Sequence record: OQ921725.1
Reading direction: 5' to 3' (one strand)
DNA length: 64,000 nucleotides
Below are positions 15,395 through 46,352 of this stretch, piece by piece (within the stretch, counting starts at the first letter, position 1; each line of letters begins with the position of its first letter). The translations under genes and the position numbers were made by a program. Under the pieces are notes generated by a model that made no database searches, had not been told where the DNA came from, and saw only the letters and a list, made by a program, of their open reading frames with translations.

Positions 15395-15403
15395 GGTGAT
15401 CGC

Positions 15404-17143: not shown

Positions 17144-17176
17144 CATCCTGCCGAGACTTTTGGCCTCGGATGCTAT
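17140..17176. terminator. Imperfect hairpin between portal and protease genes
   Basis: ATAGCAT/ATGCTAT and CCGAG/CTCGG arms. Confidence 0.35.
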
Positions 17177-17211
17177 TACGCTGTGCTCGTCGATGATCAG
17201 TGAGGGGGCTC

Positions 17212-18779: not shown

Positions 18780-18796
18780 GAGGAGGAATCTGAGAC

Positions 18797-20110
18797 ATGA
18801 GCGCGATCACCTTCCTCGACGGAATCAAGGCGACCACGAACCCCGAGTTCGAGCGCATCGCCGAGGCCCACAACAAGCGTCGGGTCGCCCTCCGCGAGTC
18901 GGCGGACTCCCGCCTGCTGAAGCTCAACAAGGCCGTCGAGTTCCTGCGCCTCAAGCGTGAGGCGGAGTTCGGCTCCCCGGTCGCGATGGGCCGCCTGCGC
19001 GAGGCCGTCTCCAGTGGCGACTTCCCGCTGCTGTTCCAGTCGATCTCGCAGGCGAGCATGCTCGGCCAGTACGCGGATCTGCCGCAGCAGTGGCCGACCT
19101 TCTCGGTGCGCACCACGGTTCCGGACTTCCGTCCGGCCCGCATGGTCCGCTGGGACACCGTGGCCGGTCAGTCGCAGACGACCGACTACAACGGCGGCGC
19201 CGAGCGTCACGTCCGGGCCCTGCCGCGCATCCCGGAGCTGACGGAGTACCCGACCTTCAACCTCACCACCGAGGGCACGGACTACTTCGTCAACAAGTAC
19301 GGCGCCCGCTTCCCCTTCTCGTGGGAAGCGTTCATGAACGACGAGCTGCGGGTTCTCCAGCAGCTTCCCACCGAGATGGCGCGGTGGGCGCGCGACACCG
19401 AGGACGTGCTGACGACCGGTGTTCTGGCCACGGCAACGGGCCCGAACGCGGACTTCTTCAACACGACCGAGGACTTCGGCGGTCAGGCCCCGGCGGGCAA
19501 CTACGTGCCGGGCAACCCGCCGCTGACGCTCGACGCGCTGGAGCACGCGATCAACTACATCGGGATGCGGCAGGTCAACGGCCGCCAGGTCCGGGTGCAG
19601 AACTTCGTGCTCCTCGTTCCGCCGTCTCTCGCGCTCACGGCGCAGGAGATCGCCCAGGGAACCACGTACCTCCGGGTGCGCCAGCTTCCCGACGGCACGG
19701 AGATGCGCCAGAACGTCTCCTCGCCGGTCGCGGGTCGCTTCACGGTCGTGGAGTCCCCGTGGCTGCCGCTCATCGACACCTCGGCGAACGCCGCCTCGAC
19801 CTGGTACCTGGTTCCGGCCGGTGGCCAGACGGAGCGCGGCCCGGCCATCGTCACCGCGTTCCTGCGCGGTCACGAGACCCCCGAGGTCCGCGTGATGGGC
19901 GACACGGGCCGTGCGCTCGGCGGCGGCGAGATCAACGCCTTCGAGGGCTCGTTCTCCCACGACGACATCCAGTACCGGGTCCGCTCGATCATCGGCGCTG
20001 CCGGTATCGACGCCTCGGCGGTGGCGGTCTCGCTGGGCACGGGCGAGGAGGCGGCGCTGTCCATGGCCTCCATCGGCGGCGGCTCGGTCTCGGGTCCCTC
20101 GGGTTCCTGA
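18797..20110 (+). CDS. Major capsid protein
   Basis: 437 aa; strong RBS GAGGAGG; highly biased codons; YGARFPFSWEAFMNDEL, LLVPPSL; followed by a hairpin. Confidence 0.9.
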   Translation: MSAITFLDGIKATTNPEFERIAEAHNKRRVALRESADSRLLKLNKAVEFLRLKREAEFGSPVAMGRLREAVSSGDFPLLFQSISQASMLGQYADLPQQWPTFSVRTTVPDFRPARMVRWDTVAGQSQTTDYNGGAERHVRALPRIPELTEYPTFNLTTEGTDYFVNKYGARFPFSWEAFMNDELRVLQQLPTEMARWARDTEDVLTTGVLATATGPNADFFNTTEDFGGQAPAGNYVPGNPPLTLDALEHAINYIGMRQVNGRQVRVQNFVLLVPPSLALTAQEIAQGTTYLRVRQLPDGTEMRQNVSSPVAGRFTVVESPWLPLIDTSANAASTWYLVPAGGQTERGPAIVTAFLRGHETPEVRVMGDTGRALGGGEINAFEGSFSHDDIQYRVRSIIGAAGIDASAVAVSLGTGEEAALSMASIGGGSVSGPSGS

Positions 20111-20189
20111 ACCGGTGAAGCCGGGCGGCGGGTGACCCGGGATTGATCCCGACCGCCCCTGCCCGGTCCCCGTTCCTGCCGGGCAGCGA

Positions 20190-20221
20190 GAGGGTCCCCC
20201 ATGTGCGACTGGGGGGCCCTC
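20190..20221 (+). terminator. Intrinsic terminator-like hairpin downstream of the capsid gene
   Basis: GAGGGTCCCCC-loop-GGGGGGCCCTC followed by TT. Confidence 0.55.
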
Positions 20222-20486
20222 TTCGCGTGCAATTGCATGATGAGAGCCAGCAGGAACTGGCGTAAAGCCCCCCACCTCGGGTATCTTATGGGTGTGGCGA
20301 GGACTCACCCTCCCCGCCCAAGAAGGAACCGTCCTTGTGCGAGTCCCCAGGACTCCGTCACGGCCACGTTTCTTCTCCTTTCCGAAGAGCCCCCGCCGCA
20401 AGGTGGGGGCTTCCGGATTTTCTGGGCCGTTTTCCAGGCGTTTGCCCCCAATGCCGTACGCTCCTCCTGAGAGACAAGGAGTGACC

Positions 20487-21302
20487 GTGGCAACACCCGA
20501 CGAGACGCGGGATCTCAGGATCGCAGCTCTCCGGGAAGCGGCGGGCACCTTCGCCACCACCCTGCCGGAGCCGGGTGAGTACACCGACGCGGCGACGCAG
20601 GTGATGCTGGAGAGGGCGAACCGCTTCTACGGCTGGCTCGTTGGCGTAACCCGGCTCATCCTCAGAGTCGGCCCAGCGGTCGGCGAAGACTCCGACGTGA
20701 CCTGGCCGAAGCACACTGCCGAAGAGGGAGAAACCGTGCAGATCAACACTGGCGAGAAGTTCAGCGTCGCGATCGACACCCGGGACGCGGCGGGCTACCC
20801 GACCGACGCCACCGTGGAGTGGTCGGTGGCCGACGAGACGATCGCGACCGTCCAGCTCGACGCGGGCGACGACCAGAAGGGCTGGGTCATCTCCGGCGCC
20901 CCGGGCAGCACCGTGCTGACCGTACGCGTCACCGACGTCGAGCCCCCACTGGAGGCGACCCTGGCCGTGGACGTGGTTCCCGCCGGGACCGCGACCGTCC
21001 AGATCAACGCCGGTCCGGCCGTTCCGGAGCAGGACCCGCAGCCCGACCCGCTGGCGCTCACCGTCACCGAGGACACCTCCGACGCCTCTCGCATGACGGT
21101 CACCGTCACCGTCGACAACAAGGGCGAGGGCGCGGTCTCCGTGGATCCGGGCGACGGCAGCGGCGTCCTGGCCAACCCGGGCGACGGCACGCCGGTCACC
21201 CACGTCTACACGGCGCCGGGCGACTACACCCTCGTGGTCACCGACGACGACAACGCCACCCGTGGCGGCAGTCAGGCCGTGACGGTTCCGTTCACCGCCT
21301 GA
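20487..21302 (+). CDS. Ig-like plus PKD domain virion protein (Hoc-like accessory)
   Basis: VEWSVADETIATV...GAPGSTVLTV (Big_2-like); VDPGDG...HVYTAPGDYTLVVTD (PKD-like). Confidence 0.75.
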   Translation: MATPDETRDLRIAALREAAGTFATTLPEPGEYTDAATQVMLERANRFYGWLVGVTRLILRVGPAVGEDSDVTWPKHTAEEGETVQINTGEKFSVAIDTRDAAGYPTDATVEWSVADETIATVQLDAGDDQKGWVISGAPGSTVLTVRVTDVEPPLEATLAVDVVPAGTATVQINAGPAVPEQDPQPDPLALTVTEDTSDASRMTVTVTVDNKGEGAVSVDPGDGSGVLANPGDGTPVTHVYTAPGDYTLVVTDDDNATRGGSQAVTVPFTA

Positions 21303-21355: not shown

Positions 21356-21784
21356 TCACAGTCCGCAGATGCACTCCGGCCGACCAGGCGCCCGGAACCG
21401 GCAGCGGCCCGGGACGTGGGGCTCATGCCTGCACAAGGCGCAGTTCTCCGGGATGAGCGCCCTTGTGTCGGAGACGACGCGCTGTTCGGCCAGACCCTGG
21501 TCCGGGTCGAACTCCAGCTCAGGCGATCCGGCCAGGTTCTCCATGCCCTCGATGTGATCTCCTCGCTCCAGGCGGGCCTGGGTGAGGTACGTGAACAGAT
21601 CGAGGGATTCTTCCCAGGCGTCCTTCAGGGCGTCACGACCGTTGTCGGTCTCCAGGATCCGGCCGTACTTCCTCTTGCCGTAGGCGCGACGCTCCTGAAT
21701 CGCCAGGATCATGATCTCCTGCACCGGCAGCTTGCCCGGCTTGGGTGCGGGCTGATCCCTCTCGGGATCTCTGACGTCAGCCAC
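21356..21784 (-). CDS. All-alpha NTP-pyrophosphatase (MazG-like) candidate
   Basis: ERRAYGKRKYG...DALKDAWEESLDLFTYL (EExxD acidic motif). Confidence 0.45.
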   Translation of the reverse strand: MADVRDPERDQPAPKPGKLPVQEIMILAIQERRAYGKRKYGRILETDNGRDALKDAWEESLDLFTYLTQARLERGDHIEGMENLAGSPELEFDPDQGLAEQRVVSDTRALIPENCALCRHEPHVPGRCRFRAPGRPECICGL

Positions 21785-21986
21785 GAAGCTCCTCCTCGAA
21801 CGACACCTGCACGTTGAAGTTGCGGTGACCCAGCAGCATGGCGAGCAGGTCGGTGATGCCGTCCTTCGCCTCGGTCCTGCTGTGCCCTTCTGCGGTTGCC
21901 GCCCCGAAGTGCGGCGGGTTGTCCACCGAGACGACCCACTTCTTGCCTTGATCGTTCCAGCGCCCCTGCGCCGTAAAGCTCTCCAC
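21777..21986 (-). CDS. Stand-alone HicB-like N-terminal domain
   Basis: RBS AAGGAAG; FTAQGRWNDQGKKWVVSVD...ATAEGHSRTEAKDGITDLLAML. Confidence 0.6.
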   Translation of the reverse strand: MESFTAQGRWNDQGKKWVVSVDNPPHFGAATAEGHSRTEAKDGITDLLAMLLGHRNFNVQVSFEEELRG

Positions 21987-22239
21987 GTCTTCCTTTCTCA
22001 GGAGCGGCGCCAGCCGCCCCACCTCTCTGAAAGCTCTTTCGCCGTGCGCCACCGGAGGCAGCGCATCAGCTTGCTCCACACGGAGCGCACTCCGTACGTC
22101 CGGGGTGCGGCGTGTTCACCCATTGCGCGCTTCCCTCTCGCGCTGCTGCTGGTTGACGTCGCGCCGGGCCGCCTCCCGCTCACTCTCCGGCCAGCGGAAC
22201 ACCGCCCACCACAGTTCGGTCAGACGGTCCAGCGCGGGT

Positions 22240-22872
22240 TCACGTCCTGGTGGGGTTCGGCGGGAGACCCAGACGGGCACGAAGCTCACGATTCTCCTCC
22301 TCCAGGTACTGCATCCTCAGCTCCTCATCGGCCGCCGAGCCCTCACGCACGTATGCGTAGTGCTCGCCGAAGTGGCCACCGTCGGGACCGACCGGCTCGG
22401 CGCATTCGAAGGTGCGGCCCGCCTCCGTCCAGGTGTGGCCGCAGAGAACCCGGCGGCACCGGCTGTCCACCTTCTCCTCACCGGACGTCAGGAACAGTTC
22501 CAGCTTGTCGGCCACGTGGCCCCTGCCGATGTCCCCTTCAGCGTCCTTGCGGAGCGTCTGGACGTAGACGCTGAGCAGCCTTCTGGCCGTCTGCCACTGC
22601 TGGCTCCGGTGCGACACCAGAACGGCGTGCTGCCGGAGGTCTTCCAGATTCTCCTCGTGCATGTGGGCTTCGCAGGCAAGTCCCTTGTCGACGCACTTCA
22701 GGAGTTCTTCCAGACGGGTCAGCCGGGCCTGCGGGTCCAGCTCCAGGAGGCGGTGCCACCACTGGCCGGGCGTGAGGCACACCCCTTCAGCGGGCTCGCT
22801 GCGGTCCTCTCCTGCGCGCAGTCTCTCGATCTGCCCCGTCAGGTCATGCACCGTGTTCAGGTCTTCCAGCAT
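22240..22872 (-). CDS. Hypothetical protein
   Basis: ATG at 22872 coupled to the upstream stop; helical content plus a CGH...C...HFGEH motif. Confidence 0.6.
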   Translation of the reverse strand: MLEDLNTVHDLTGQIERLRAGEDRSEPAEGVCLTPGQWWHRLLELDPQARLTRLEELLKCVDKGLACEAHMHEENLEDLRQHAVLVSHRSQQWQTARRLLSVYVQTLRKDAEGDIGRGHVADKLELFLTSGEEKVDSRCRRVLCGHTWTEAGRTFECAEPVGPDGGHFGEHYAYVREGSAADEELRMQYLEEENRELRARLGLPPNPTRT

Positions 22873-23279
22873 CACGCCTCTTCTCCGTATTCGGGATCGC
22901 GCAGATGCGAAATGATCTGCTGCCATTCCCGATCGATCTCCATGCGCTCCTCGCGCGTGATCGGCCTGGGCCGCCGATACCTGTACCGAGTGCATACCGC
23001 TTCGTCGTGCAGGTAGCCGGTGTCGTCGAACTGAAGGCAGCAGGGATTCAGGGGATCCTGCTCGATCCCCTTCTTCGCCCGATCCCACCACTCGATCTCG
23101 GCCTCTCGGCGATCCGCCCTGCCCTTCTGCCGCCAGCCGCTCCAGAGCAGGAAGGTCGCGACATACAGCGTGATGATAGAGAGGGGCCACAGGCCAGCCA
23201 CCATGAACAGAACGCTCACGACGACGCAGCCGAGCGACGCGGAGAAATCCCGGAGCGCGTTCTTCTGGTGACTGGCCAT
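22872..23279 (-). CDS. Membrane protein
   Basis: Two N-terminal hydrophobic segments. Confidence 0.6.
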   Translation of the reverse strand: MASHQKNALRDFSASLGCVVVSVLFMVAGLWPLSIITLYVATFLLWSGWRQKGRADRREAEIEWWDRAKKGIEQDPLNPCCLQFDDTGYLHDEAVCTRYRYRRPRPITREERMEIDREWQQIISHLRDPEYGEEA

Positions 23280-23291
23280 GGCTCACTTCCT

Positions 23292-23666
23292 TCAGCTCGG
23301 CGGGAGCGCCTTCGGTACGCCGGGGCAGGTGACGGCCGTGCCGTCCATGGAGATGCGCTCAGTGAGCGGTACGTCGATCGGGCTCCGGCCGCAGCACGGC
23401 ATCAGCCCCGACCCTTCGGGCGGGCAGGCGTGGACGATGGTGTCCTCCTCGCCGATCACGAGCGTGCTCAGCCGCTCGAACTCGGTCGACAGGACGGCCA
23501 GGGCCCGCCCCACCGACTCCATTGCGGCACGCACGTCACCGAGATCGACGGCCAGCTTCTCCAGGCGCTCGGCGTCGCTCACCTGCTCGGGCTCGGGTTC
23601 CTGCTCGACCCCCGGGAGCGGCACGCTGATCGTGTCCTCTTCGGCGGTCGTCTTGTCCTCGTTCAC
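23292..23666 (-). CDS. Hypothetical protein
   Basis: Coiled coil followed by HACPPEG...PCCGR...VTC. Confidence 0.55.
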   Translation of the reverse strand: MNEDKTTAEEDTISVPLPGVEQEPEPEQVSDAERLEKLAVDLGDVRAAMESVGRALAVLSTEFERLSTLVIGEEDTIVHACPPEGSGLMPCCGRSPIDVPLTERISMDGTAVTCPGVPKALPPS

Positions 23667-23914
23667 GATTCTTCCTCCTCGCCACGGCGCCGCAGTTCGT
23701 TCACGTGGCTGCCGTCGTACCTGACCTTGTCCAGACCGGCCACGCCGAGAGAGGTGACCATCCGGTCGACCTCGTGCAGCGCCGCAGCGGCGAGCTGCGG
23801 GTTCTCGAACTGGCCGGTCTTCTGCATCCGCTCGTACTCGTCGATCAGCAGGGCACTGGCCACGCGGAGCTGACGCAGGCTGATCTCCAGGGCGCGAACG
23901 CGCTCGTCACTCAT
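23663..23914 (-). CDS. Hypothetical protein
   Basis: RBS GGAGAGG; GTGA overlap. Confidence 0.55.
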   Translation of the reverse strand: MSDERVRALEISLRQLRVASALLIDEYERMQKTGQFENPQLAAAALHEVDRMVTSLGVAGLDKVRYDGSHVNELRRRGEEEES

Positions 23915-24251
23915 CGTCTTCCTCTCCAGGCTCCGGGATCCGGTAGCCCTTGCGGCCGAGCTGGAAAGCCAGACGGCCGATGGCCTCACTGTCTGCGGGT
24001 TCGCCTTCCGCCCATTCGGCCACCACCTGAAGGACTTCGCGGGCCGCCCGGTCGGTGGGCAGGAACCTCACCCAGTCGATCTTCCGGCCGTTGTGGTCCT
24101 TCATCGTGTCCAGCTCGACGGGGCCGTAGAACCTGCCCTGCATGTTGGCGACCGGGACGAACCAGGGCTCGTTGCCCGGATCCCAGAAGGCCATCACGTA
24201 GCCGTCGTCGGAAAGCCTGAACTCCCAGCGGGTGCGGGAAGGAATGATCAT
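23907..24251 (-). CDS. Hypothetical protein
   Basis: ORF in a coupled operon. Confidence 0.55.
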   Translation of the reverse strand: MIIPSRTRWEFRLSDDGYVMAFWDPGNEPWFVPVANMQGRFYGPVELDTMKDHNGRKIDWVRFLPTDRAAREVLQVVAEWAEGEPADSEAIGRLAFQLGRKGYRIPEPGEEDDE

Positions 24252-24943
24252 CCCGACAGCCCCCAGTCGGCACGGCGCACCCGGAGCAGCCAGCGCTCGA
24301 CCGCAGCGACGTCGGGCTCACCCAGGATGGCCGTCTTCGTCGAGTCGAACCGGACCTCCGCCTGGCGCATGTACTTCTCGGCGCGCGAAGGGTCGTCTGC
24401 GATCTGGCTGCCCACCTGAAAGACCCAGTCCGGATCGATCTCACTGGCGTTGCTGCGCAGGTTCACCACCAGCTCGCCGGAGCGGTAGAGGTGGAAGCCC
24501 TGCTCGACCAGGCGCACCAGGTGCCGGGCGTGCTTCTCCGTGCGCTTGCGGGTGTCGGCCGAGAAGCTGCCGTCACCCCGGTTCCTCAGCCGCTCGAACT
24601 GACTGGTGGCGTAGCCGAGGTAGGAGTCGCGCACCTTCTTGGCCGACAGGAACGAGCGCCGGAGTCCGATCAGGTCGTCCCCCAGGTTGTCGACGTACTC
24701 GTACCGGTCCAGCCACAGCAGCTCGGAAACCGACGGGTTGCCGTTCAGACAGAGCGTGACGAACTTCTTTGCCTCGTGCAGCGTCGTGTCGGGGTCCTTT
24801 GAAACCACCGACTCCTGCACTTTTCCGAGGCCGAGAACTTCGCTCGTCGGCGCCGCGAAAACCCCCATGTAGTCCACATCAGAATTCTCGTGGTTCAGTC
24901 CGTATGCCGTGGAACCCACGACACCTTTCAGCAGAACATTCAC
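24248..24943 (-). CDS. Pol-beta superfamily nucleotidyltransferase (RlaP/Nuc-transf-like)
   Basis: GVVGSTAYGL...SDVDYMGVF; HEAKKF...LNGNP...ELLW; KHARHLVRL. Confidence 0.85.
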   Translation of the reverse strand: MNVLLKGVVGSTAYGLNHENSDVDYMGVFAAPTSEVLGLGKVQESVVSKDPDTTLHEAKKFVTLCLNGNPSVSELLWLDRYEYVDNLGDDLIGLRRSFLSAKKVRDSYLGYATSQFERLRNRGDGSFSADTRKRTEKHARHLVRLVEQGFHLYRSGELVVNLRSNASEIDPDWVFQVGSQIADDPSRAEKYMRQAEVRFDSTKTAILGEPDVAAVERWLLRVRRADWGLSG

Positions 24944-25601
24944 GTTTCTCTCCTCTCCGCCTTACGGTACTTACGGGAGCTGACGGGAGCTGACGGGAGT
25001 CCTGCTCCTCGTCCGGCTCCTCCTCGTCGGGTGGTGGCGGGAAGCCCATCTTCTCCAGGGTCCAGCCCAGGTCGCCCGTGTCGTATCCGGCTCCGTCGTT
25101 GACGTCAGCGATCCACTTCCAGACCGCCCTCGCCAGGTCGTCGCGCTGCTGCTCGGCCTTCACGCGCGCCTCGTGGGGCGTCATCGCGTCGAAGGCGTCG
25201 CGCTGCACCGTGATGATGTACTTGTCGGTGGACTCGGCCACCTTCACGCCCATTTCTACCTTGTCGCCACGGTTGGCCAGGTGGTCCACGCGATCGGTGA
25301 GAACCGTCTCGGAGTAGTTCGGCCCGGCGCCGATCAGGCCCCGGCAGGCGCCGACCCACATCGCGACCATCTCGCGGGCGGGCTCCAGGTCCATCGTCGC
25401 GGTGCCGTTGCGGTACTCGGCGGCCCGGATGCCGACCTGCGCCATCTGCTCCGTGATCCACCGCTGGGCGACCGCATCCTCCAGGAGGGCTTCGACCACC
25501 TGCTGCGCGTCAGCCTCGGGGAGCTTCTTCGCCGCCTTCGGGCTGACCTGCTTCAGCAGTTCCAGAAGAACGCCACCCAGACCTTCTGTCGCTTCGCTCA
25601 C
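24879..25601 (-). CDS. Hypothetical protein whose C-terminus is extended through a 10-bp repeat
   Basis: 240-aa ORF whose last ~65 nt overlap the nucleotidyltransferase gene. Confidence 0.6.
   Translation of the reverse strand: MSEATEGLGGVLLELLKQVSPKAAKKLPEADAQQVVEALLEDAVAQRWITEQMAQVGIRAAEYRNGTATMDLEPAREMVAMWVGACRGLIGAGPNYSETVLTDRVDHLANRGDKVEMGVKVAESTDKYIITVQRDAFDAMTPHEARVKAEQQRDDLARAVWKWIADVNDGAGYDTGDLGWTLEKMGFPPPPDEEEPDEEQDSRQLPSAPVSTVRRRGEKRECSAERCRGFHGIRTEPREF
24973..24999. repeat. 10-bp tandem repeat (ACGGGAGCTG, about 3 imperfect copies)
   Basis: TTACGGGAGC TGACGGGAGC TGACGGGAGT read directly. Confidence 0.85.
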
Positions 25602-25909
25602 GTGCCCCTCTTCTCCAGTCTGATCTTGGAATCCTGAATGCCGACCCTCACCCGGAACTCGTGCGCGCAGGGATCCACCTTCATGATGACCGCCGCGTCG
25701 TCCATGGCGAGCACGGGCGGTTCAGTCCGCATACCGATGTAGCCCGCCTCGCCCTTGCATTCGGGGCAGCGCGGCGCCCTGTTGTCGCAGGTGACGATCT
25801 CCGGGTGCTCGGTGACCAGATCCCCGGAGGGAAGGAGAAGCGGAAGCATGCCGCAGCAGACCACCGGGTTCTCCTTCCCGTCCCCGTCCAGCACTTCGTG
25901 GATCTTCAC
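25598..25909 (-). CDS. Cys-rich hypothetical protein
   Basis: CCG...VTC...CPECKG. Confidence 0.55.
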   Translation of the reverse strand: MKIHEVLDGDGKENPVVCCGMLPLLLPSGDLVTEHPEIVTCDNRAPRCPECKGEAGYIGMRTEPPVLAMDDAAVIMKVDPCAHEFRVRVGIQDSKIRLEKRGT

Positions 25910-25910
25910 G

Positions 25911-26177
25911 TCACCATCCGCCCGGGACCGTCAGGCCGGTCGCCTTCTTCTCCACCGGGCACTCGTCCTCGGGGCACCGGTCCGTGTCGCGGACCATGAT
26001 GAGGTGCTTCAGGCTGCGCTCGCCGCTGGCGAACGCCACGTCTCCGTCGGCATCCCGGGCGACGATCCAGTCCGTGCCAGCCGCCTCGATCTTCACGCAG
26101 TCGTAGTGATCCCGGCCGAATCCGCCCTGGGCGAATCCGTGGATCACGTCACCGATCTTCAGCGGTTCTCCGCTCAC
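25911..26177 (-). CDS. Hypothetical protein
   Basis: GFAQGGFGRDHYDCVKIEA. Confidence 0.6.
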   Translation of the reverse strand: MSGEPLKIGDVIHGFAQGGFGRDHYDCVKIEAAGTDWIVARDADGDVAFASGERSLKHLIMVRDTDRCPEDECPVEKKATGLTVPGGW

Positions 26178-26193
26178 GACCCTTCCCTCTTCC

Positions 26194-26712
26194 TCACCAC
26201 CAGTGGCGGTAGATGTAGTTCCCTCGCGGCAGTTCTCCGCGCCGGATCAGATCGGCGATGACACCGCCCAGTGATGGAGTGAATGCGCGGGCGGCGAAGA
26301 ACTCGCTCTCGAAGACAGCCCCTTCGAGGTCCATGTGTTCCGGCGGGTTGGCGTCCACCGTCACGTCCTCGGGGTGCTCGGCGATCTTGATGCTCAGCCA
26401 GTAGTCGAGCTGGGTCACGCCCTGCTTGACCTTCGACTCTCCTGCCTCGCGGTCCCAACCCAGGTAGATCTCGGTCTGGTCGAAGCCGTACAGCTCCTCC
26501 TCGAAGTCATCTTCCGAGGCGAACATGTACACCTTCTCCGCGTCATTGCAGAGGTTGGGACTATCCCTCTGACAGCCGCGCAAGGAGTTGTACTTCTTGC
26601 CGTAGACCCGCGAGGCGATCACGTCGATGGGGATGTAGCCGGATCCGTCGCCGACTTCGGCATGCGGATCCAGCGTGAAGTAGCTGACCGCTTCGTACTG
26701 TGCAGACGTCAT
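26194..26712 (-). CDS. Acidic hypothetical protein
   Basis: ATGA overlap with the upstream gene. Confidence 0.6.
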   Translation of the reverse strand: MTSAQYEAVSYFTLDPHAEVGDGSGYIPIDVIASRVYGKKYNSLRGCQRDSPNLCNDAEKVYMFASEDDFEEELYGFDQTEIYLGWDREAGESKVKQGVTQLDYWLSIKIAEHPEDVTVDANPPEHMDLEGAVFESEFFAARAFTPSLGGVIADLIRRGELPRGNYIYRHWW

Positions 26713-27116
26713 TGTGCGCTCACCCCTCCTTCCCACTGTTTGACGATCTTTTGCGCCATCCTTCTCGCGTGGATCACGAGATATTCGAAGGCGCCGTACC
26801 GGTCGATCTCCTCCAGTGCCGCGTTGAAGAGATCGATCACCATCCGAACGAACCGGGGATCCATCAGTGCGATGAGCTGCGCATCGGTCAGGGTCACCTC
26901 GTTATTCGGGTCCGACATGCAGTCACCCATGACCATGTCGCCGCGCTCGTTCATCACCCCGACCACACGCCGGTCGTCCTCGGCCTCTTCGACCGCGAGC
27001 TGCCAGTCCATCCCCGAGTCGTTGCCGGAGACGGTGTACAGCCGCATGAGGATCTTGCGCGCGGCCCGGATCTCATTCCTGGCGGCTTCGACCTCGGCCG
27101 CATCGAGCACGGCCAT
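26709..27116 (-). CDS. Hypothetical protein
   Basis: TGATG coupling. Confidence 0.6.
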   Translation of the reverse strand: MAVLDAAEVEAARNEIRAARKILMRLYTVSGNDSGMDWQLAVEEAEDDRRVVGVMNERGDMVMGDCMSDPNNEVTLTDAQLIALMDPRFVRMVIDLFNAALEEIDRYGAFEYLVIHARRMAQKIVKQWEGGVSAQ

Positions 27117-27463
27117 CAGTTGCTCAGATCCGCGATGATCCGGAAACCGATCGCGTTGACCGGCGGGATCTCGGCCTGTCGCAGGAAGCGCTGGATCTGA
27201 CCGCGCCAGACCGCCATCTGCTCCTCGGTGAAGTCGGCCATGTCGACCGGGTGCGGCTTCAGCGGCTCGGCGCTCTCGCAGTACGTGGTGATGAACAGCT
27301 CCTGGCTGGCGTAGCTGCCCGCCTCCAGGTAGCCGAGGTCGGCCCCGGTCTCCGCGTTGTACTTCCGCAGGGCGCCCTTCTCTTCCAGGAGTTCCTTGAA
27401 GTGGCTGCCGACCTTCACACAGAAGGCCAGGTAACCCCTCGCGTACTGCCTCACGAAATCCAC
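27116..27463 (-). CDS. Hypothetical protein
   Basis: RBS AAGAGGA and GTG start. Confidence 0.55.
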   Translation of the reverse strand: MDFVRQYARGYLAFCVKVGSHFKELLEEKGALRKYNAETGADLGYLEAGSYASQELFITTYCESAEPLKPHPVDMADFTEEQMAVWRGQIQRFLRQAEIPPVNAIGFRIIADLSN

Positions 27464-27951
27464 TCCTCTTGGCGGGGTGCGATGTTCAGGATCTGGGCGC
27501 TCGTGCAGGGCCAGGAAACGCGGCGGCCCATGCGGTAGAACTCGTCGGAACCGGTGTCCTGGTTGCGGACCTTGACCCACTTCCAGTCGACACAGCGGGC
27601 GCAGACCTTCCGGCTCACGTTGGCCCGGTTCGCGCCGTACTCGTCGGTGGGCCGGTGCCCGAAGTCGTTGTCGGCGACGAGCTGAACCGCGATCTCCTGG
27701 AAGCGCGGGTAACAGACGGCGCAGGGCTCCAGGTCGCGGATCGCGGCCAGGTCGATCGAGATCGCCTCGGCGGCCGGAGGCTTGTCCCCGGCACAGCCGC
27801 AGTACGGGTCGCCGCATCGGCAGGCGAAGATCATGTGGCCAGCCCCACGGGCCCGGCACTCGGGGTCCTCGTGGAAACGCCTCGCCCTGCGGGAGACGTA
27901 GACCGTGTTGGATCCCTCGGTGAGCGACATCAGCGCGACGGCGAGCTTCAC
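27451..27951 (-). CDS. Cys/His metal-binding hypothetical protein
   Basis: RFHEDPEC...LEPCAVC...CARC...WPC. Confidence 0.55.
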   Translation of the reverse strand: MKLAVALMSLTEGSNTVYVSRRARRFHEDPECRARGAGHMIFACRCGDPYCGCAGDKPPAAEAISIDLAAIRDLEPCAVCYPRFQEIAVQLVADNDFGHRPTDEYGANRANVSRKVCARCVDWKWVKVRNQDTGSDEFYRMGRRVSWPCTSAQILNIAPRQEEWIS

Positions 27952-28241
27952 TTCTCGCCACCCTTCGCGGACTCTTTCGCCAGCTTCTCCTGGTGCGCCT
28001 TCTCGGCATCGATGTCGGCCTTCAGGTCCAGCCGCTCGTAGGTCATCCAGCGGCCGGTGTCCTTCTGCCACTCGTAGACCGTCACGCGGATGATCCGGCT
28101 GGAGCCCTCACGGATCAGCTCGCGCTCGCCGTTGATGCCCGCGTAGCAGGTGGACTTCGAACGGAACTTCTTCTCCGGGAGCGGCGCCGCCGCCGTGAAC
28201 GGCACGTACTTCCAGGTGTAGGTGGGCCTCTTCGTCGCCAC
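27948..28241 (-). CDS. Hypothetical protein
   Basis: RBS GAGAGGAG; GTGA overlap. Confidence 0.6.
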   Translation of the reverse strand: MATKRPTYTWKYVPFTAAAPLPEKKFRSKSTCYAGINGERELIREGSSRIIRVTVYEWQKDTGRWMTYERLDLKADIDAEKAHQEKLAKESAKGGEK

Positions 28242-28268
28242 GTTCCTTCTCCTCTCCGATTCCGCCCG

Positions 28269-28433
28269 TCAGCCGGGCGGCTCTTCTCGCATCCGCGCCA
28301 TCAGCTCATCCAGCGAGCCGACCGGCGGGGTGCGGCCGTCCCCGAAGGTGACGACCCTCCATGCTCTGTACTGGTCGAGAGCCCACTGGCCGGGGTCAAC
28401 CCCTTCCGGTGGACCTTCTGCGTCCATGCACAT
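28269..28433 (-). CDS. Small hypothetical protein
   Basis: RBS GGGAGG. Confidence 0.4.
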   Translation of the reverse strand: MCMDAEGPPEGVDPGQWALDQYRAWRVVTFGDGRTPPVGSLDELMARMREEPPG

Positions 28434-28538
28434 GCGCTTCCTCCCTTCCACCCGGCGAGCCGGGCCGCATGGAGGATAGCGCACTGTTCGAATGGAACTT
28501 GCCTGTGAAACAGGAATGTTCGATATGCAGGTATCCGG

Positions 28539-28895
28539 TTACTGCGAGTTTGCGACGGCCGCAACCGCAACGGTCTTGCCCTCGGGCCCGACGTGGGGCG
28601 AGAGGAGCTTCACGAGAACCGGCATCTTCGGCTCGTTGCGGTGCATGGCCGCCCGGGTCTCCAGCAGTCCGGCCCCGCGCAGTGCCGCCACCTGCTTGAT
28701 GATCGTGGTGGCTCCGGCGTTGCGACCGGCGATGCCGGGGTGGAGCTGCATCAGCCCGTCCAGCGTCACCGGGAAGTACTCGTCCTCAGCACCCGCCTCT
28801 CGCGAGGCCGCGTCGAGGATCACGTAGAGCCGGAAGGCGCCGTGCGGGACGTTCGGGGTCAGGGCTGCCGCGAGGACGCGGTCGGTCGGCTGCAT
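28539..28895 (-). CDS. Winged-HTH DNA-binding protein, paralogue 1
   Basis: ALTPNVPHGAFRLYVIL...TIIKQVAALRGAGLL. Confidence 0.6.
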   Translation of the reverse strand: MQPTDRVLAAALTPNVPHGAFRLYVILDAASREAGAEDEYFPVTLDGLMQLHPGIAGRNAGATTIIKQVAALRGAGLLETRAAMHRNEPKMPVLVKLLSPHVGPEGKTVAVAAVANSQ

Positions 28896-28951
28896 GTGCT
28901 TCTCCTTTCCGAGAACCACAGTACACCCTTTTCCACCGTCGAGCGCAAGGC

Positions 28952-29389
28952 TTAGCGAGAAGAACGAATCCAGCCAGGCTTGTCCAGCAGGGCTTGCTTG
29001 ACCTGCTTCAGGGTCGATTCGGGATCCTTGCGCAGCTCCAGAAGCCGAAGGTGCAGCTCGGCCTTCGACCACTGAGGACCGATGATCTCGATCAGGCCCT
29101 CTTCTTGCAGCTCGCGTAGTGCATCCCGGAAGGCGGTCTCCCCGAGTGGCTTACCTCGAACTCCAGGAACCAGCTCCTTCAGCAGAGGAACAGAGGTGGC
29201 TGTGGTTCGCTCGCGGTTGATCTCGCCATTCAGCAAGAAGGCCAGAGCGGCATACACCCGAAACGAGTTGTGAGTCAGGTTGCGGTTCACGAGAGCGTCG
29301 CAGATGCGCGCTTCGACAGGGTTCACGATCTCCTCCTTTACCGAGAACTCTATCAGATTTCCGTGAGCATCACGTACCTCCTTCACCAC
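28952..29389 (-). CDS. Winged-HTH DNA-binding protein, paralogue 2
   Basis: ALVNRNLTHNSFRVYAAL...AFRDALRELQEEGLI. Confidence 0.65.
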   Translation of the reverse strand: MVKEVRDAHGNLIEFSVKEEIVNPVEARICDALVNRNLTHNSFRVYAALAFLLNGEINRERTTATSVPLLKELVPGVRGKPLGETAFRDALRELQEEGLIEIIGPQWSKAELHLRLLELRKDPESTLKQVKQALLDKPGWIRSSR

Positions 29390-30160: not shown

Positions 30161-30163
30161 CTG

Positions 30164-30652
30164 ATGGCAGCCGTAGGAACGACCGCTTCGCAGGACGTGT
30201 ACCCGCCGGATTTCGGATCCGTGATCGGTCAGATCCGCGCCCTCGTGCCGGACGTCGAGCAGGTCGACTACTCGGACTCCGGCATCGCGGAGTACATGTT
30301 CAGTGACGCCCACCTGCGCGGGCTGTACACGATCGCCATCGGGGAGGGGTCGGCGAGGATCTACCGGGCGGCGGCATCGGCTCTTCGGGCGCTCGCCGTT
30401 TCCGAAGGTCTGATCCAGAAGGTCATCCGTACCGAAGACCTTCAGACCGACGGCGCGAAGCTGGCCGGTGCCCTGCTCGCCGGAGCGAAGCAGCTCGAAG
30501 ACCGGGCGGATGCGGCCGACGAGGATTCCGAGATCATGATGATCGTGGACTTCCAGCCGGTGCCGCAGGACGGCTTCCCCTTCGCTCTGCACGGTTTCCC
30601 GCAGGGATGGATGGTGGGAATCGGCGGCTCTACTCTCGCGCGCTGGCTGTGA
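30164..30652 (+). CDS. Head-to-tail adaptor
   Basis: GQIRALVPD...MFSDAHL...AAASALRALA...TEDLQTDGAKLA. Confidence 0.8.
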   Translation: MAAVGTTASQDVYPPDFGSVIGQIRALVPDVEQVDYSDSGIAEYMFSDAHLRGLYTIAIGEGSARIYRAAASALRALAVSEGLIQKVIRTEDLQTDGAKLAGALLAGAKQLEDRADAADEDSEIMMIVDFQPVPQDGFPFALHGFPQGWMVGIGGSTLARWL

Positions 30653-30724
30653 CAAGGGAGATCCGGGATTCGGGTGAAGATTCCCTGAACTTGGATCCTA
30701 CTGGCGCGTAGGCGGGTAGCTTCC

Positions 30725-30943
30725 ATGGATCCAGCTTCTGGGAGAGCAGGGACCATGGAAAAGAAGGAATACGAGCCGCCGATCACCGTCTCCGAGGGAG
30801 GTGGAAAGATCACCATCTCCTACGATCAGACCGAGGTCTCCATCCCTGAGAACGGACCGGTACCCAGCGGCACCCCACCCCTCGCCTGCCGCATCTTCAA
30901 CGCGCTGAAGTGCGATCTTCCGGGGCGTCTGCGTGCAGAATAG
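30725..30943 (+). CDS. Small hypothetical protein
   Basis: 72-aa ORF between connector genes. Confidence 0.45.
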   Translation: MDPASGRAGTMEKKEYEPPITVSEGGGKITISYDQTEVSIPENGPVPSGTPPLACRIFNALKCDLPGRLRAE

Positions 30944-30948
30944 GCCCC

Positions 30949-31518
30949 ATGGCCTCACTCAACAGGCGCAGCGCCCTGGATCCCCGCTGGCAACTGCACC
31001 AGCGGTCGGTTCCTCGCGGCCACATGAACGCGGCGGTGGAGATCTTTCGCAGGCCGTCGCAGGGTGGCGAGTACGGCTTCGACCCCATCTCCGGCGGCCT
31101 GACGATTCCCGATGGGCAGGGTGGAGAGAAGTTCCCTGAGCTGATCCTGCTCTACCGGGGTCCGGGCCGCATCGCGAACAACAAGGACTGGCGTGCCCGG
31201 GTCAGGACCCAGCGCGGCGACATGGGTACGGACCACGCGATCCGCGTCCAGGTGCCGATCCGTACGTGCCCCCCGGTCCATGCCAACGATCTGGTGCGCG
31301 CCCTCGAACCGGACCCGAACGATCCGGAACTCGGTCATCTGGTCCTCGGAGATCCGGAACTGGTCCATTACCTTTTCCACGTACGCAACCCGCTCATGTC
31401 CTCGAACGCATGGCTGAGGAATGTCCTCTGTGACGTGGACGCGGCGCACCCGCAGACGCTGCCGCCACCTTTCACCATGGAGGTCACCACCTTGAGCAAC
31501 GGGGTGATGGGTCCTTGA
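30949..31518 (+). CDS. Head-to-tail stopper (head closure protein)
   Basis: Position after the adaptor; LYRGPGRI...VQVPI...NDLVR pattern. Confidence 0.65.
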   Translation: MASLNRRSALDPRWQLHQRSVPRGHMNAAVEIFRRPSQGGEYGFDPISGGLTIPDGQGGEKFPELILLYRGPGRIANNKDWRARVRTQRGDMGTDHAIRVQVPIRTCPPVHANDLVRALEPDPNDPELGHLVLGDPELVHYLFHVRNPLMSSNAWLRNVLCDVDAAHPQTLPPPFTMEVTTLSNGVMGP

Positions 31519-31537: not shown

Positions 31538-32452
31538 GTGGGCCTGAAGATTGCGCTGCTCAGCCGGGACAATGGCGTGGGTCTGTCGCTGGATACCGCA
31601 CTGCTCACCGAGCTTTTCGAGTCGGCTGGGCATGAGGTCGAATTCCACGACTGGCAGGCCAAGGAGATGCCCAGGACGGACGTCGCCTTTCACCTGGAGC
31701 TGGTCAGCCGGAATCTCGCTCAGTTCGCCGACAAGAACATCGCCATTCTGAATTTGGAATGGTATCCACGGGAGTGGATGAAGTACCTTCCGGCGTTCGA
31801 CCAGATCTGGGCGAAAAGCCACTACGCCCTGCGGTTCTGTCGCAACCGGGGAGGCAAGAACGTCCAGCTCACGGGCTTTCTGGGGACGGATCTCCATGAC
31901 CCTGACGTGAAGCGCGAGCTGAAGTGCATGCACCTGCGCGGCAGGTCCGGCATGAAGGGCACCGAGCAGGTGATCGGGGCCTGGCAGAAGGACTCCACGT
32001 TGCCCCCGCTTACGATCATCTCGAAGGACGAGGTGCACATTCCCGCCGGACTGGAGGACCGCATCACGGTCGTCCTGTCGCCTTCCGACGAGGAGCGCAA
32101 CCGGCTGATGAACGAGGCGCAGATCCACGTCTGCCCTTCCATCGCCGAGGGGTGGGGCCACTACATCACCGAGGCCATGTCGGTGGGGGCGATCGTGGTG
32201 ACGACCGACGCGTCCCCGATGAACGAGCACATCAGACCGGAGTGGGGCTACCTCGTCGGGGTGACCAGCACGCGCAATCACCACCAGGCGATCCTCACGT
32301 ACACCTCCCCGACGCTGATCGCCGAGGCGGTCCGGCGGGCCGCTGCTCTCACGCCGGAGCGTCGCGAGCAGATCGGGAACGAGGCACGCGCCCGCTTCCT
32401 GAAGCGCAATGCAGAGTTCAGGGAAATCGCACTGAGGCTGGTGGAGCGGTGA
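31538..32452 (+). CDS. GT-B fold glycosyltransferase (GT4-like)
   Basis: HVCPSIAEGWGHYITEAMSVGAIVVTTD (Ex7E motif). Confidence 0.9.
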   Translation: MGLKIALLSRDNGVGLSLDTALLTELFESAGHEVEFHDWQAKEMPRTDVAFHLELVSRNLAQFADKNIAILNLEWYPREWMKYLPAFDQIWAKSHYALRFCRNRGGKNVQLTGFLGTDLHDPDVKRELKCMHLRGRSGMKGTEQVIGAWQKDSTLPPLTIISKDEVHIPAGLEDRITVVLSPSDEERNRLMNEAQIHVCPSIAEGWGHYITEAMSVGAIVVTTDASPMNEHIRPEWGYLVGVTSTRNHHQAILTYTSPTLIAEAVRRAAALTPERREQIGNEARARFLKRNAEFREIALRLVER

Positions 32453-33279
32453 AGCACACGGTTCTGGTTCCGGCGTGGCGCAGGCCCGACATGCTCCACG
32501 CCTGCCTCACCAGGCTGGCCAAGGCGGCGGCCGGATACAACGTTCGGGTGGTGGTCACGCTCGACCGGAAGGGAACTCTCGAATGCCGCCAGGTGGCCGA
32601 GTCCTTTTCCACGTCGTTCTCTGAGATATTCCTGCGCGTGATGCACCACCATCAGTTCCACGGGAATTCCTACAACGTGCTGTCGGGCCTCAAGGATGCC
32701 CTGGCGATCGAGGCCGATCTGATTCACGTGGTCGAGGACGACATCATGGTCTCACTCGGCTACTTCGCGTACCACGAGGCCGCTCACGCGGCTGCCCCTG
32801 ACGCCTTCTCGGTGAGCGCGTGCCGGAACCAGAACCTGACAGGCGAACCCCCGGCGGCGGCGTACCGGCATCCGTCCTACCAGTCGCTGGGCGTGTCCTT
32901 CCGCCCGGCGGTGGCACGCAAGGCGGTCGAGCACAACAAGCCGGTCTACTACGGCGATATGGTCGGGTACTGCCGCCGGACCTTCCCCGGCAGCCGGATC
33001 CCGCCGGGACATGCCGAGCAGGACGGGCTGTTCAACCGCATCCGAGAGCGCGAGCGCGGTGTGACGGTGTACCCGGCACAGCCCCGGGCTTTCCATGCCG
33101 GGTTCTACGGGTACAACCGGACCGGCCGGAAACTCTCGGGCTCGATCGAGCGCCGGTCGGAGAAGATCCTCTCGATGACCTCGGAAGAGATGAACGCGAT
33201 GGCGGGCCTGATGAAGGACCATGAGGTCATCGACCTGGATGAGAATCTGCCGGTCGACGAGGTGAGGGAGGCCCTGTAA
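32449..33279 (+). CDS. GT-A fold glycosyltransferase (GT2-like)
   Basis: TVLVPAWRRPDMLHACL; IHVVEDDIMV (DxD-like); GTGA-coupled to the GT-B gene. Confidence 0.8.
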   Translation: MKHTVLVPAWRRPDMLHACLTRLAKAAAGYNVRVVVTLDRKGTLECRQVAESFSTSFSEIFLRVMHHHQFHGNSYNVLSGLKDALAIEADLIHVVEDDIMVSLGYFAYHEAAHAAAPDAFSVSACRNQNLTGEPPAAAYRHPSYQSLGVSFRPAVARKAVEHNKPVYYGDMVGYCRRTFPGSRIPPGHAEQDGLFNRIRERERGVTVYPAQPRAFHAGFYGYNRTGRKLSGSIERRSEKILSMTSEEMNAMAGLMKDHEVIDLDENLPVDEVREAL

Positions 33280-33686
33280 TGGCGTATATCGGGATCAAGT
33301 ACAACTACCGGTTCGGCGGCGCGCAGCGGTACTACGGCGGCGGCTCGCCGAACGGCGCCTTTGACATCGGGCTCTCCGCGTTCGTCATCGACCACCTGAA
33401 CAAGTCGAGGCAGAAGCTCGTTCTGGAGATGTCGAACGCCCGGCGCCGGGGCGAGGGTCTGGTGCGGGCGAAGTCGCGCGTGGACACCGGCCGGATGAAG
33501 TCCTCGGTCACTGGTACCGGCGACTTCGGTACGGACATCCTGAAGATCAGCTTCGGATGGGAGCAGAACAACCCGTACTACGCCCCGTTCCAGGAGTTCG
33601 GTACCCGCAACGGCATCACGCCGATGATGGCCGTGCTCGACGCCTTCAACCAGGTGACGGCAGAACTCCAGGCGCGGCTCAAGTGA
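33279..33686 (+). CDS. HK97 gp10-like neck / tail completion protein
   Basis: SRVDTGRMKSSV...YAPFQEFGT...PMM; TAATG coupling. Confidence 0.8.
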   Translation: MAYIGIKYNYRFGGAQRYYGGGSPNGAFDIGLSAFVIDHLNKSRQKLVLEMSNARRRGEGLVRAKSRVDTGRMKSSVTGTGDFGTDILKISFGWEQNNPYYAPFQEFGTRNGITPMMAVLDAFNQVTAELQARLK

Positions 33687-33717: not shown

Positions 33718-34203
33718 ATGACCTCCCTGCTGGACTGGCAGCTCGCCATCTACAACCGGCTCGACACCGGACTGCCGAACACACCTGTTTTCCTGGAAGG
33801 CGTTCCTGAGAACACCGACGTCATCAAGGACCCCTCGGGCTTCTACAAGCCGAGCGTCATCCTCTGGTTCGGCCAGGCATTCGACATCTCCGGATTCGGA
33901 GGCCGCCTCTCCGTCGCTGACCTCTGCGGAATTTCCGGAGAAGACAAGGGCATCACGAAGAAGGCCGGGTTCATCGTCGAATCCGTTGCGCCATCCGGTC
34001 TTTCGCTGCTTCAGCTCGCCCAGGCGTGCCGGGATCTGCTGGTTGGATACACGCCCGCAGACCAGGGTGAGATCAGTGAAGCCGGATCGGGAACGGTGCG
34101 CGATCCGTACCCGGTTGGTGTCGGCGACACGCTGCGTTTCTACCTGGCGATCGGGTTCCAGGGTGTCGTGAATGTCAGCCAGCACACCGGAACCGGTTCG
34201 TGA
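33718..34203 (+). CDS. Tail terminator
   Basis: Position between the neck protein and major tail protein. Confidence 0.65.
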   Translation: MTSLLDWQLAIYNRLDTGLPNTPVFLEGVPENTDVIKDPSGFYKPSVILWFGQAFDISGFGGRLSVADLCGISGEDKGITKKAGFIVESVAPSGLSLLQLAQACRDLLVGYTPADQGEISEAGSGTVRDPYPVGVGDTLRFYLAIGFQGVVNVSQHTGTGS

Positions 34204-34295: not shown

Positions 34296-34862
34296 ATGGC
34301 AGCAGTGAAGAGCCTCCCCCCGTCGCTCACCATCTGGTGGGTCGACGAATCGGACCAGACGTCCGAGGGGTACGAGGGCACGTACGGCGAGGGTTTCGCG
34401 GACATCGACCACCCGACCGCCGCAGAGATCAACGCGGGTCTGAACATCTCGTGCGCACTGACCACCGACATCACGCTCGGCTGGACGGACCGCGACACGG
34501 ACGACACGCGTGGCCTCTGTGACGACTCGAACGTGGCGACCCCGACCGCGAAGAACTACGAAGGCCAGCTCAACGTCTTCCTGGACCGCGACCCGAACAA
34601 GCTCGACCCGTCGATCTACAACGACGTGATGCGCCTGTTCAAGAAGCCCCTCCGTTCGGGGTTCCTGGTCCAGCGGATCTCGAAGCACCCCGTTCGTGAC
34701 CCGAACGCGGTGGACGACGACTGGGTCACGGTCTTCAAGTTCCTCTCCGGTGACCCCAACGTCATCAACGACGCGACCGCCCCCCTTCAGCTTCAGCCGA
34801 CCATGTACGCCCAGGGCCAGTCCTCGGACGGCCTTGTGCAGGTCGGCAGCACCGCGAGCTGA
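34296..34862 (+). CDS. Major tail (tube) protein
   Basis: PTAAEINAGLNISCAL...TRGLCD...YEGQL; highly biased codons. Confidence 0.85.
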   Translation: MAAVKSLPPSLTIWWVDESDQTSEGYEGTYGEGFADIDHPTAAEINAGLNISCALTTDITLGWTDRDTDDTRGLCDDSNVATPTAKNYEGQLNVFLDRDPNKLDPSIYNDVMRLFKKPLRSGFLVQRISKHPVRDPNAVDDDWVTVFKFLSGDPNVINDATAPLQLQPTMYAQGQSSDGLVQVGSTAS

Positions 34863-46187: not shown

Positions 46188-46352
46188 GTGTCCTCGGAGG
46201 ACGTGCTGAGTTCGTACGAACGCCAGCTCACCGAGGCTCACAGAAAGATCGCCATGCTGGAGGCCGCACTGGAGCGCGAGCGCCGGGCCGCCTCGCAGGC
46301 CCGTATCGTCAGTCAGCAGTCCGATCAGGCCGATCCGCAGGAGATGCCGTGA
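46188..46352 (+). CDS. Small coiled-coil protein
   Basis: YERQLTEAHRKIAMLEAAL; GTGA coupling. Confidence 0.5.
   Translation: MSSEDVLSSYERQLTEAHRKIAMLEAALERERRAASQARIVSQQSDQADPQEMP

Follow-up and report, generated by a model that had tools for sequence, protein, structure and literature searches.

A glycosyltransferase pair in the connector operon of Streptomyces phage Frankenweenie and its probable role in virion glycosylation

The stretch of DNA analysed here, hereafter the window, comprises the first 64 kb (64,000 nucleotides) of the genome of Streptomyces phage Frankenweenie (OQ921725.1; cluster BM, 200,048 bp). It contains two adjacent glycosyltransferase genes, gp60 and gp61, which lie among the genes of the connector and tail. 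The O-glycosylation of virion proteins is probably the function of this pair, and is the best reading that its sequence and surroundings suggest. The enzymes look analogous, and not homologous, to the set used by mycobacteriophage Che8. A sequence-only reading of the window had already proposed that the two enzymes are expressed late and have virion proteins as their substrates; the position of the genes, their recurrence in other phages and a terminal Gly-Ser on several virion proteins now support this proposal, which rests on sequence evidence. The same reading took the phage for a probably environmental one, which was mistaken: Frankenweenie, to which 3.4 kb around the gene pair match with 100% identity at unchanged coordinates, was isolated from soil with Streptomyces scabiei RL-34 as host, and its particle is that of a siphovirus with a greatly elongated, prolate head.

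The two enzymes and their families

The coordinates, reading frames and junctions first assigned to the two genes (Table 1) were all found correct on re-check. The end of gp60 overlaps the start of gp61 through a GTGA (32449-32452), and gp61 is joined to gp62 through a TAATG (33277-33281). The 4-base overlap between gp60 and gp61 is also present in phages JustBecause and Satis; the 1-base overlap between gp61 and gp62 is shared with Satis, JustBecause having a 6-base gap instead. Both products are already called 'glycosyltransferase' in the GenBank record OQ921725.1. The same region is found in six further BM phages, JustBecause, Kela, Quantum, Satis, Kradal and EhyElimayoE, with a DNA identity of 79-81%; the founding BM genomes have been described previously (PMC6687918).

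The initial description of a GT-B enzyme with an Ex7E motif and a GT-A enzyme with an EDD motif holds, the key residues of both motifs being invariant in homologues, and the fold and CAZy classification suggested as a check has been carried out. The outcome is a GT4-type enzyme for gp60 and a GT13-like enzyme for gp61. The gp60 protein exceeds the threshold of the Pfam family Glycos_transf_1 (45.2 bits for a cut-off of 26.4, E 9.5e-12). It carries the EX7E motif as E204-GWGHYIT-E212 (32147-32173), both glutamates being invariant in 25 homologues, and it has the GT-B fold, as is expected of a GT4/Glycos_transf_1 member. Its AlphaFold2 model, of high predicted local distance difference test score (pLDDT 93.8), has its best Foldseek matches in PimA (2gej), BshA (3mbo) and a methylmannose-polysaccharide mannosyltransferase (7qsg), with template modelling (TM) scores of 0.76-0.78; MshA is also close, and the chlorovirus GT-B protein 3oy2 is found among the fold matches. 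Like PimA, MshA, BshA and the methylmannose-polysaccharide enzyme, gp60 is a two-Rossmann GT-B protein of the soluble cytoplasmic type with an EX7E motif. It differs from the GT4 enzymes in being short (304 aa), in the reduction of its N-terminal domain and in conserved motifs of its own (SRDNGVGLS, NLEW and QxWAKS). Homologues form 343 clusters, each of about 300 aa.

The family of gp61 is more remote from known enzymes. Its E96-D97-D98 motif is encoded at 32734-32742; E96 and D98 do not vary among 28 homologues, unlike the residue between them, and H216 and a PRAxHAGF motif are invariant as well. Alone, gp61 gives only weak Pfam matches (Glyco_tranf_2_3 and Glycos_transf_2). A profile built from 24 homologues reaches, among PDB sequences, POMGnT1 (1.5e-9), GnT-I (1.1e-5) and GnT-II (5e-5). 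In the alignment to 5ggf and 2am3, the EDD of gp61 falls under their EED/EDD and PRAxHAGF under R-x-Y-H-x-G. The AlphaFold2 model of gp61 (pLDDT 95.9) has its best Foldseek matches in 5ggf and 1fo8, at about 2e-11 and TM 0.50-0.56. The nearest solved relatives of gp61 are thus animal glycoprotein-processing enzymes, which act on protein-borne glycans. With GnT-I (MGAT1) and POMGnT1, both of CAZy family GT13, gp61 shares the GT-A fold, the aligned E-D-D metal/nucleotide motif and a C-terminal R-x-Y/F-H-x-G; it is nevertheless only 17-19% identical to them, is a phage-encoded protein of 276 aa and has neither stem nor membrane anchor. The enzyme is called GT13-like and not a GT13 member because the Pfam GNT-I model is reached weakly by only two of 28 family members, the best of these matches (E 4.5e-4) falling short of the model's own threshold. 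The family is a sizeable one without a name of its own, since an exhaustive profile search yields 289 representatives (50% identity level) at E<=1e-30, and no dedicated model for it was found among the Pfam and NCBIfam models scanned.

Recurrence of the genes and the terminal Gly-Ser of virion proteins

When 50,697 phage records were searched by tblastn with gp60 and gp61, only the seven BM phages gave matches. The pair is found, with conserved order, in the connector/tail operon of all seven BM isolates and of about 14 BM-like viral contigs. Scanning IMG/VR with the gp60 profile extended this range to 59 loci, 45 of them with a close gp60 relative. A gene of the gp61 family lies within 4.2 kb of this relative in 39 of the 45, or in 39 of 40 informative loci: five of the six loci without a gp61 relative end just after the GT-B gene and are hence uninformative. 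An O-methyltransferase gene of the Methyltransf_24/RMNT_CmcI type lies between the gp60-like and gp61-like genes in a Rhodococcus contig, in an Actinomadura contig and in a 56-kb metagenomic phage. In actinophages of about 55 kb, the genes run from portal and MuF through a 439-aa protein, GT-B, methyltransferase and GT-A to the capsid hexamer and pentamer genes and the tail tube, the 'pentamer' label being taken from the annotation of phage Mask. In a phage with a GC content of 0.36, the pair lies between the tail genes and the portal gene. At one locus of the 55-kb lineage (L077, 4036-6349), a Glyco_trans_1_2 GT-B gene and an FkbM methyltransferase gene occupy the interval between head-morphogenesis and capsid genes, and this pair is a non-orthologous replacement of the gp60/methyltransferase/gp61 cassette. 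From these loci of several lineages, it is therefore concluded that sugar-building genes recur in virion clusters and that unrelated enzymes can be exchanged there.

The methyltransferase is not missing from Frankenweenie. A sugar-type O-methyltransferase, gp21 (gp13 in JustBecause), is 29% identical (E 6e-26) to the enzyme encoded between the GT-B and GT-A genes of the Actinomadura contig, and gp21 is the cassette's third member, here located away from the other two. A paralogue of gp61, gp171 (33% identity, E 3e-41), with EED in place of EDD, is encoded beyond the window, in the stretch OQ921725.1, 111985-113783, where it overlaps gp170, and this second copy is present in all seven BM phages, next to a second tail-fibre/tailspike cluster (gp166-169 in Frankenweenie). 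The annotation of gp170 as a uridine diphosphate glucose dehydrogenase was rejected, the Pfam assignment being NAD-dependent epimerase/dehydratase. Genes gp170 and gp171 are probably part of the same glycan system. A third GT-A glycosyltransferase, gp80, is encoded among the replication genes, beside a Cas4-type exonuclease; its family keeps the motifs DxD, GxGxED and HLWH, and gp80 homologues (E 1e-22 to 1e-38) lie directly upstream of capsid genes in eight other actinophage loci. It possibly belongs to the same toolkit. The virion proteins of these eight loci end in ...IPT or ...PT. Another annotated glycosyltransferase, gp104 (OQ921725.1, 68971-69606), was discarded, as Pfam identifies an SLT lytic transglycosylase domain. 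In place of the two-gene system initially envisaged, the BM phages thus seem to carry a larger, dispersed toolkit of five to six genes, which includes gp21 and probably gp170/gp171 and is described here for the first time.

The candidate acceptors were recognised by their C-termini. Serine-rich ends had been anticipated; the common feature is instead one terminal serine, mostly after glycine. The GPSGS end of the capsid protein gp34 is kept in JustBecause and Satis, with variable residues upstream, and the ATGS end of gp33 is identical in both. The gp63 counterparts end in GAGS in these two phages and in GTGS, DVGS, EVGS or AGNS in BM-like contigs, with serine in six of six called proteins. 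The tail tube ends in STGS in JustBecause and Satis and in STAS, STGS or ALAS in BM-like contigs (serine in 14 of 14), and gp72 corresponds to GYGS in JustBecause and GEGS in Satis. Gly-Ser is thus found on five virion-module proteins across three BM sub-lineages, while the neighbouring residues change; the one departure is Ala-Ser on the tail tube of Frankenweenie. In this phage, Gly-Ser ends are carried by 4 of 22 virion-module proteins and by about 4 of 350 others, a post hoc comparison (Fisher p 5.6e-4) on crude open reading frame (ORF) calls: the background was drawn from calls based on the GC content of third codon positions, which miss several true genes and add shadow ORFs. The same ending is found in the lineage of Che8. 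The Che8 capsid protein gp6 (PDB 8E16, identified as Che8 in PMC12494034) ends in ...KTGS, and so does the capsid protein of Maravista (cluster F1, a Cheoctovirus like Che8), the tail tube of which ends in ...SDGS. Separately, the portal protein (15404-17143) ends in ...DESTS in Frankenweenie and JustBecause; the annotated Satis portal ends in ...ELRDE and is devoid of those residues.

Proposed mechanism, related systems and competing explanations

The mechanism that would account for these observations is as follows. As soluble enzymes produced together with the late virion proteins, gp60 and gp61 would, with gp21, build a short O-linked and partly methylated glycan on the C-terminal serine of virion proteins, in the host cytoplasm, either ahead of assembly or while it proceeds. 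Among these proteins, gp33, gp34 (capsid), gp63, gp64 (tail tube) and gp72 are the likely acceptors. The retaining enzyme gp60 would attach an alpha-linked hexose or N-acetylhexosamine from a nucleoside diphosphate sugar, or extend the glycan with it. The inverting enzyme gp61, metal-dependent through E96, D98 and H216, would resemble GnT-I and POMGnT1 in transferring a beta-linked sugar onto an acceptor that is itself a sugar, and gp21 would methyl-cap a hydroxyl. The paralogous pair formed by gp170, as a nucleotide-sugar epimerase/dehydratase, and gp171 probably contributes. The likely benefit would be a hydrophilic coat over head and tail.

Related arrangements are known. The methylmannose pathway pairs its GT4 mannosyltransferase with an O-methyltransferase, and the pairing of gp60 is similar. 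In the glycosylation of serine-rich repeat adhesins, the GT-B enzymes GtfA/GtfB start on serine in the cytoplasm and GT-A enzymes extend the chain, a similar logic; the BM acceptor would be a single terminal serine and not a long series of serine-rich repeats. Chlorovirus PBCV-1 also encodes a cytoplasmic glycosylation of its capsid, methylated sugars included; it differs in being a giant virus of eukaryotes and in using other enzymes, which make atypical N-linked glycans. The only phages known to carry glycans on their particles are a few mycobacteriophages, in which these sugars alter antibody recognition. The glycans are reportedly O-linked to the C-termini of capsid and tail-tube proteins, and putative glycosyltransferases are said to have been noted in some Streptomyces phages.

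The closest comparison is that with the virion O-glycosylation of mycobacteriophages Che8, Corndog and Myrna (as cited in PMC11256854 and PMC12363180). The Che8-type system likewise consists of phage-encoded cytoplasmic glycosyltransferases with an associated methyltransferase and has the capsid and tail tube as proposed targets; Gly-Ser ends are seen on the Che8 capsid, on the Maravista capsid and tail tube and, apart from the Frankenweenie tail tube, on the BM candidate acceptors. The enzymes are different: GT2/Glyco_transf_7C-like and GT25-like at the far right genome end in the Che8 type, GT4-type and GT13-like in the connector operon in Frankenweenie. No significant match was obtained by BLASTP of gp60 and gp61 against Maravista gp99 or of gp61 against Maravista gp101, and the gp80 profile reaches Maravista gp99 with an hhalign probability of 29%. 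Direct homology of gp60 and gp61 to the Che8-type enzymes was rejected on the negative BLASTP and on the restriction of tblastn matches to BM phages. The Che8 parallel drawn by the sequence-only reading thus survives as an analogy and fails as a homology. The host, moreover, is Streptomyces here, with a system known from its genes alone, and Mycobacterium for the Che8 type.

Several points weigh against virion O-glycosylation. Its support in the BM phages comes from sequences and predicted structures, and gene position alone leaves the substrate unfixed. The BM enzymes look unrelated to the proven Che8-type ones, and the terminal serine of the Che8 proteins is only reportedly the modified residue. 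The terminal-serine pattern was noticed post hoc, with single genomes as controls. No head or connector cluster is visible around the cassette in the Rhodococcus and Actinomadura contigs. Finally, about 14 related loci of a second capsid lineage encode serine-ended virion proteins while the surrounding +-10 kb are devoid of a glycosyltransferase gene.

This second lineage provided the controls. Among its 46 loci, Ser/Thr-ended proteins occur with a glycosyltransferase in view in 17 (eight with the cassette, one with the alternative pair and eight with a gp80-like gene; one locus has both the cassette and a gp80-like gene). This test of co-occurrence is limited by the flank length of +-10 kb, because the enzymes of Actinoplanes phage phiAsp2 lie 18 kb from the capsid genes. 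This phage, the closest isolate to the 14 or so loci devoid of a glycosyltransferase, encodes a putative glycosyltransferase (Pas33), a 596-aa O-methyltransferase fusion (Pas34) and then Pas35 (L120, 28287-31466); Pas35, annotated as hypothetical, is homologous to the GT25-like gp101 of Maravista (E 1e-26). The tail tube, the adaptor and two further proteins of phiAsp2 end in serine. By analogy, this suggests that the enzymes of the 14 loci may lie further away. Conversely, Mycobacterium phage Mask also belongs to this capsid lineage; no glycosyltransferase is annotated in it, its genome matches none of the enzyme references used, and none of its ten head, connector and tail-tube proteins ends in Ser/Thr. 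The pattern of terminal serine is therefore two-sided between phiAsp2 and Mask, for few genomes and post hoc. The proposed co-occurrence of the enzyme pair with the C-termini accordingly finds support in this contrast, and no clean result in the local test of 46 loci.

Three other explanations were weighed, all of them weaker than virion O-glycosylation. The enzymes might modify a polymer of the host cell envelope, such as a teichoic acid, a wall glycopolymer or a glycosylated receptor. Wall polymers are indeed common targets of GT4 and GT-A enzymes, gp60 homologues are named 'glycosyltransferase involved in cell wall biosynthesis' in one source, TarM and TarS are among the lower-ranked Foldseek matches and, in the Actinomadura contig, the cassette adjoins an Amidase_2 lysin. 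This remains quite unlikely, however, as neither hydropathy nor annotations reveal a membrane segment, a flippase or an enzyme of lipid carriers accompanying gp60/gp61, and the pair lies between connector genes and not in a moron or lysis locus. The Gtr-type modules that alter serotype or wall polymers comprise a membrane transferase and a flippase; here the maximal 19-residue hydropathy stays below 1.3 for gp60, gp61 and gp21, with no membrane-like segment, and the neighbours are connector and tail proteins. Neither the terminal Gly-Ser nor the replacement by an unrelated glycosyltransferase and methyltransferase in the same head-gene slot would be explained by a wall target. The associated benefit, a late change that stops the adsorption of progeny or competitors to the dying cell and its debris, is just as improbable. 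It is also unlikely that the target is something else again, be it a small molecule such as a host antibiotic or thiol, a phage protein absent from the virion or a host protein. The closest folds to gp60 do include small-molecule enzymes (BshA, MshA and pterin glucosyltransferases), a fold does not reveal the substrate, and serine-ended virion proteins are also found where no glycosyltransferase is in view; Gly-Ser would then serve assembly contacts or a different modification, which has an equally low probability. Such a target leaves unexplained why gp60/gp61, or unrelated glycosyltransferase/methyltransferase pairs, are placed repeatedly in the virion clusters of distant phages.

The glycosylation of hypermodified bases in phage DNA, as a protection against restriction comparable to the T-even glucosyltransferases and the systems that glycosylate 5-hydroxymethylcytosine, is very improbable. 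GT-B enzymes do occur among phage DNA glycosyltransferases, the genome encodes a DNA methyltransferase, ThyX and a deoxycytidine monophosphate deaminase, and a preprint (10.1101/2023.12.21.572611) states that virus glycosyltransferases decorate DNA with diverse glycans. Known systems of this kind combine an enzyme producing hydroxymethyl bases with a location in DNA metabolism; gp60/gp61 have neither, since they belong to the late structural operon, outside the replication module, and a Pfam analysis of gp11-13 and gp81-83, which covered the neighbours of the DNA methyltransferase and of gp80, disclosed neither a hydroxymethylase nor a TET-like dioxygenase domain. The building of a glycan on a sugar acceptor is rather what the GnT-I-like fold and the presence of a sugar O-methyltransferase point to. 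For a role on DNA, gp80 would be a better candidate than gp60/gp61, yet its homologues adjoin capsid genes.

The step from an actinophage glycosyltransferase to virion glycosylation is by now routine and has been published (PMC11256854, PMC13313380). What is new here are the enzyme families (GT4-type, GT13-like and sugar O-methyltransferase), the cassette nature of the genes with their wide spread in virion modules, and the terminal Gly-Ser/Ser/Thr signature common to the BM phages and Che8. If virion O-glycosylation holds for the BM and metagenomic phages, the trait would have arisen or been acquired several times and would be far commoner than one report suggests. The signature and the enzyme families would then predict modified virion proteins from sequence, an aid to the interpretation of cryo-electron microscopy maps and to virion proteomics. 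Particle stability and adsorption in soil would be concerned, as well as the choice of phages against plant-pathogenic Streptomyces or mycobacteria. A wider proposal is decidedly more tentative, namely that gp60/methyltransferase/gp61 is one of several interchangeable glycan sets within or beside the virion clusters of tailed phages, those of low-GC hosts included, all aimed at a C-terminal Ser/Thr of capsid, tail-tube and connector proteins. Virion glycosylation would in that case be widespread and predictable from sequence and not a mycobacteriophage peculiarity, and a eukaryote-like GnT-I-type enzyme would gain a phage role.

Features and genomic surroundings

Table 1. Genes of the window considered in this analysis (positions in the window)
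Gene	Product or role	Coordinates	Strand	Remarks
gp21	Sugar-type O-methyltransferase	9560..10120	+	Pfam Methyltransf_24, 5e-13
gp33	Annotated head fibre protein, candidate acceptor	18291..18779	+	C-terminus ...ATGS
gp34	Major capsid protein, candidate acceptor	18797..20110	+	C-terminus ...GGGSVSGPSGS
gp57, gp58, gp59 (DUF6093)	Upstream connector-region genes, same operon	30164..31518	+	Tight spacing
gp60	GT-B glycosyltransferase, GT4 (retaining) type	31538..32452	+	GTG start, 304 aa
gp61	GT-A glycosyltransferase, GT13-like	32449..33279	+	GTG start, 276 aa
gp62	Neck1/tail-completion (HK97 gp10-like)	33279..33686	+	Start overlaps gp61 stop
gp63	Neck/tail-tube interval (tail-terminator position), candidate acceptor	33718..34203	+	C-terminus ...GTGS
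gp64	Tail tube, candidate acceptor	34296..34862	+	C-terminus ...VGSTAS; Phage_TTP_16, 5e-26
gp72	Last tail-module gene, candidate acceptor	46349..46822	+	C-terminus ...LEGS
gp80	Third GT-A glycosyltransferase, replication module	57196..57903	-	Weak Pfam GT2 match

The structural genes form two blocks, one from terminase to capsid (12291..21302) and a second, on the + strand, from gp57 (30164) to gp72 (46822). In the second block, the genes overlap or are tightly spaced, and a scan for terminator-like sites from gp57 to the tail genes found none above the shuffled expectation. The order gp57-gp58-gp59-GT-B-GT-A-gp62-gp63-tail tube is kept in BM-like loci. The glycosyltransferase genes had been placed between head-closure and neck genes. 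A neck role for gp62 is plausible from its matches, which are weak (PHROG phrog_5, 8.9e-6; NCBIfam HK97-gp10, 0.0098, under its cut-off); the head-closure assignment was not borne out, gp59 being assigned by Pfam to DUF6093. Single-sequence searches of the PDB with gp59, gp60, gp61 and gp62 returned no significant match, and only profiles worked.

The two blocks are separated by 21 genes of the opposite strand (21356..29326), one of which encodes a nucleotidyltransferase. A stretch of 840 bases without annotated gene (29327-30163) then precedes gp57. Presumably a divergent promoter region, it also contains unannotated ORFs at 29270-29641 and 29645-30034.

Cysteine-containing C-termini were observed in the 55-kb lineage (L014, 12477-20137; L028-L041; L074-L101; phiAsp2, L120, 8361-13562). 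There ...GCC[A/P/S] is the C-terminus of the capsid hexamer protein, and in the tail tube and a 183-aa protein of the connector region a C-x-C stands just ahead of the C-terminus. A disulfide-cross-linked capsid is the subject of a section heading in a preprint on the related phage Jabs. In the BM phages, the gene 3' of the capsid gene, gp35 (20487-21302), encodes a protein with a weak PKD/Ig-like domain, is present in Frankenweenie and Satis and not in JustBecause, and may specify an optional decoration protein.

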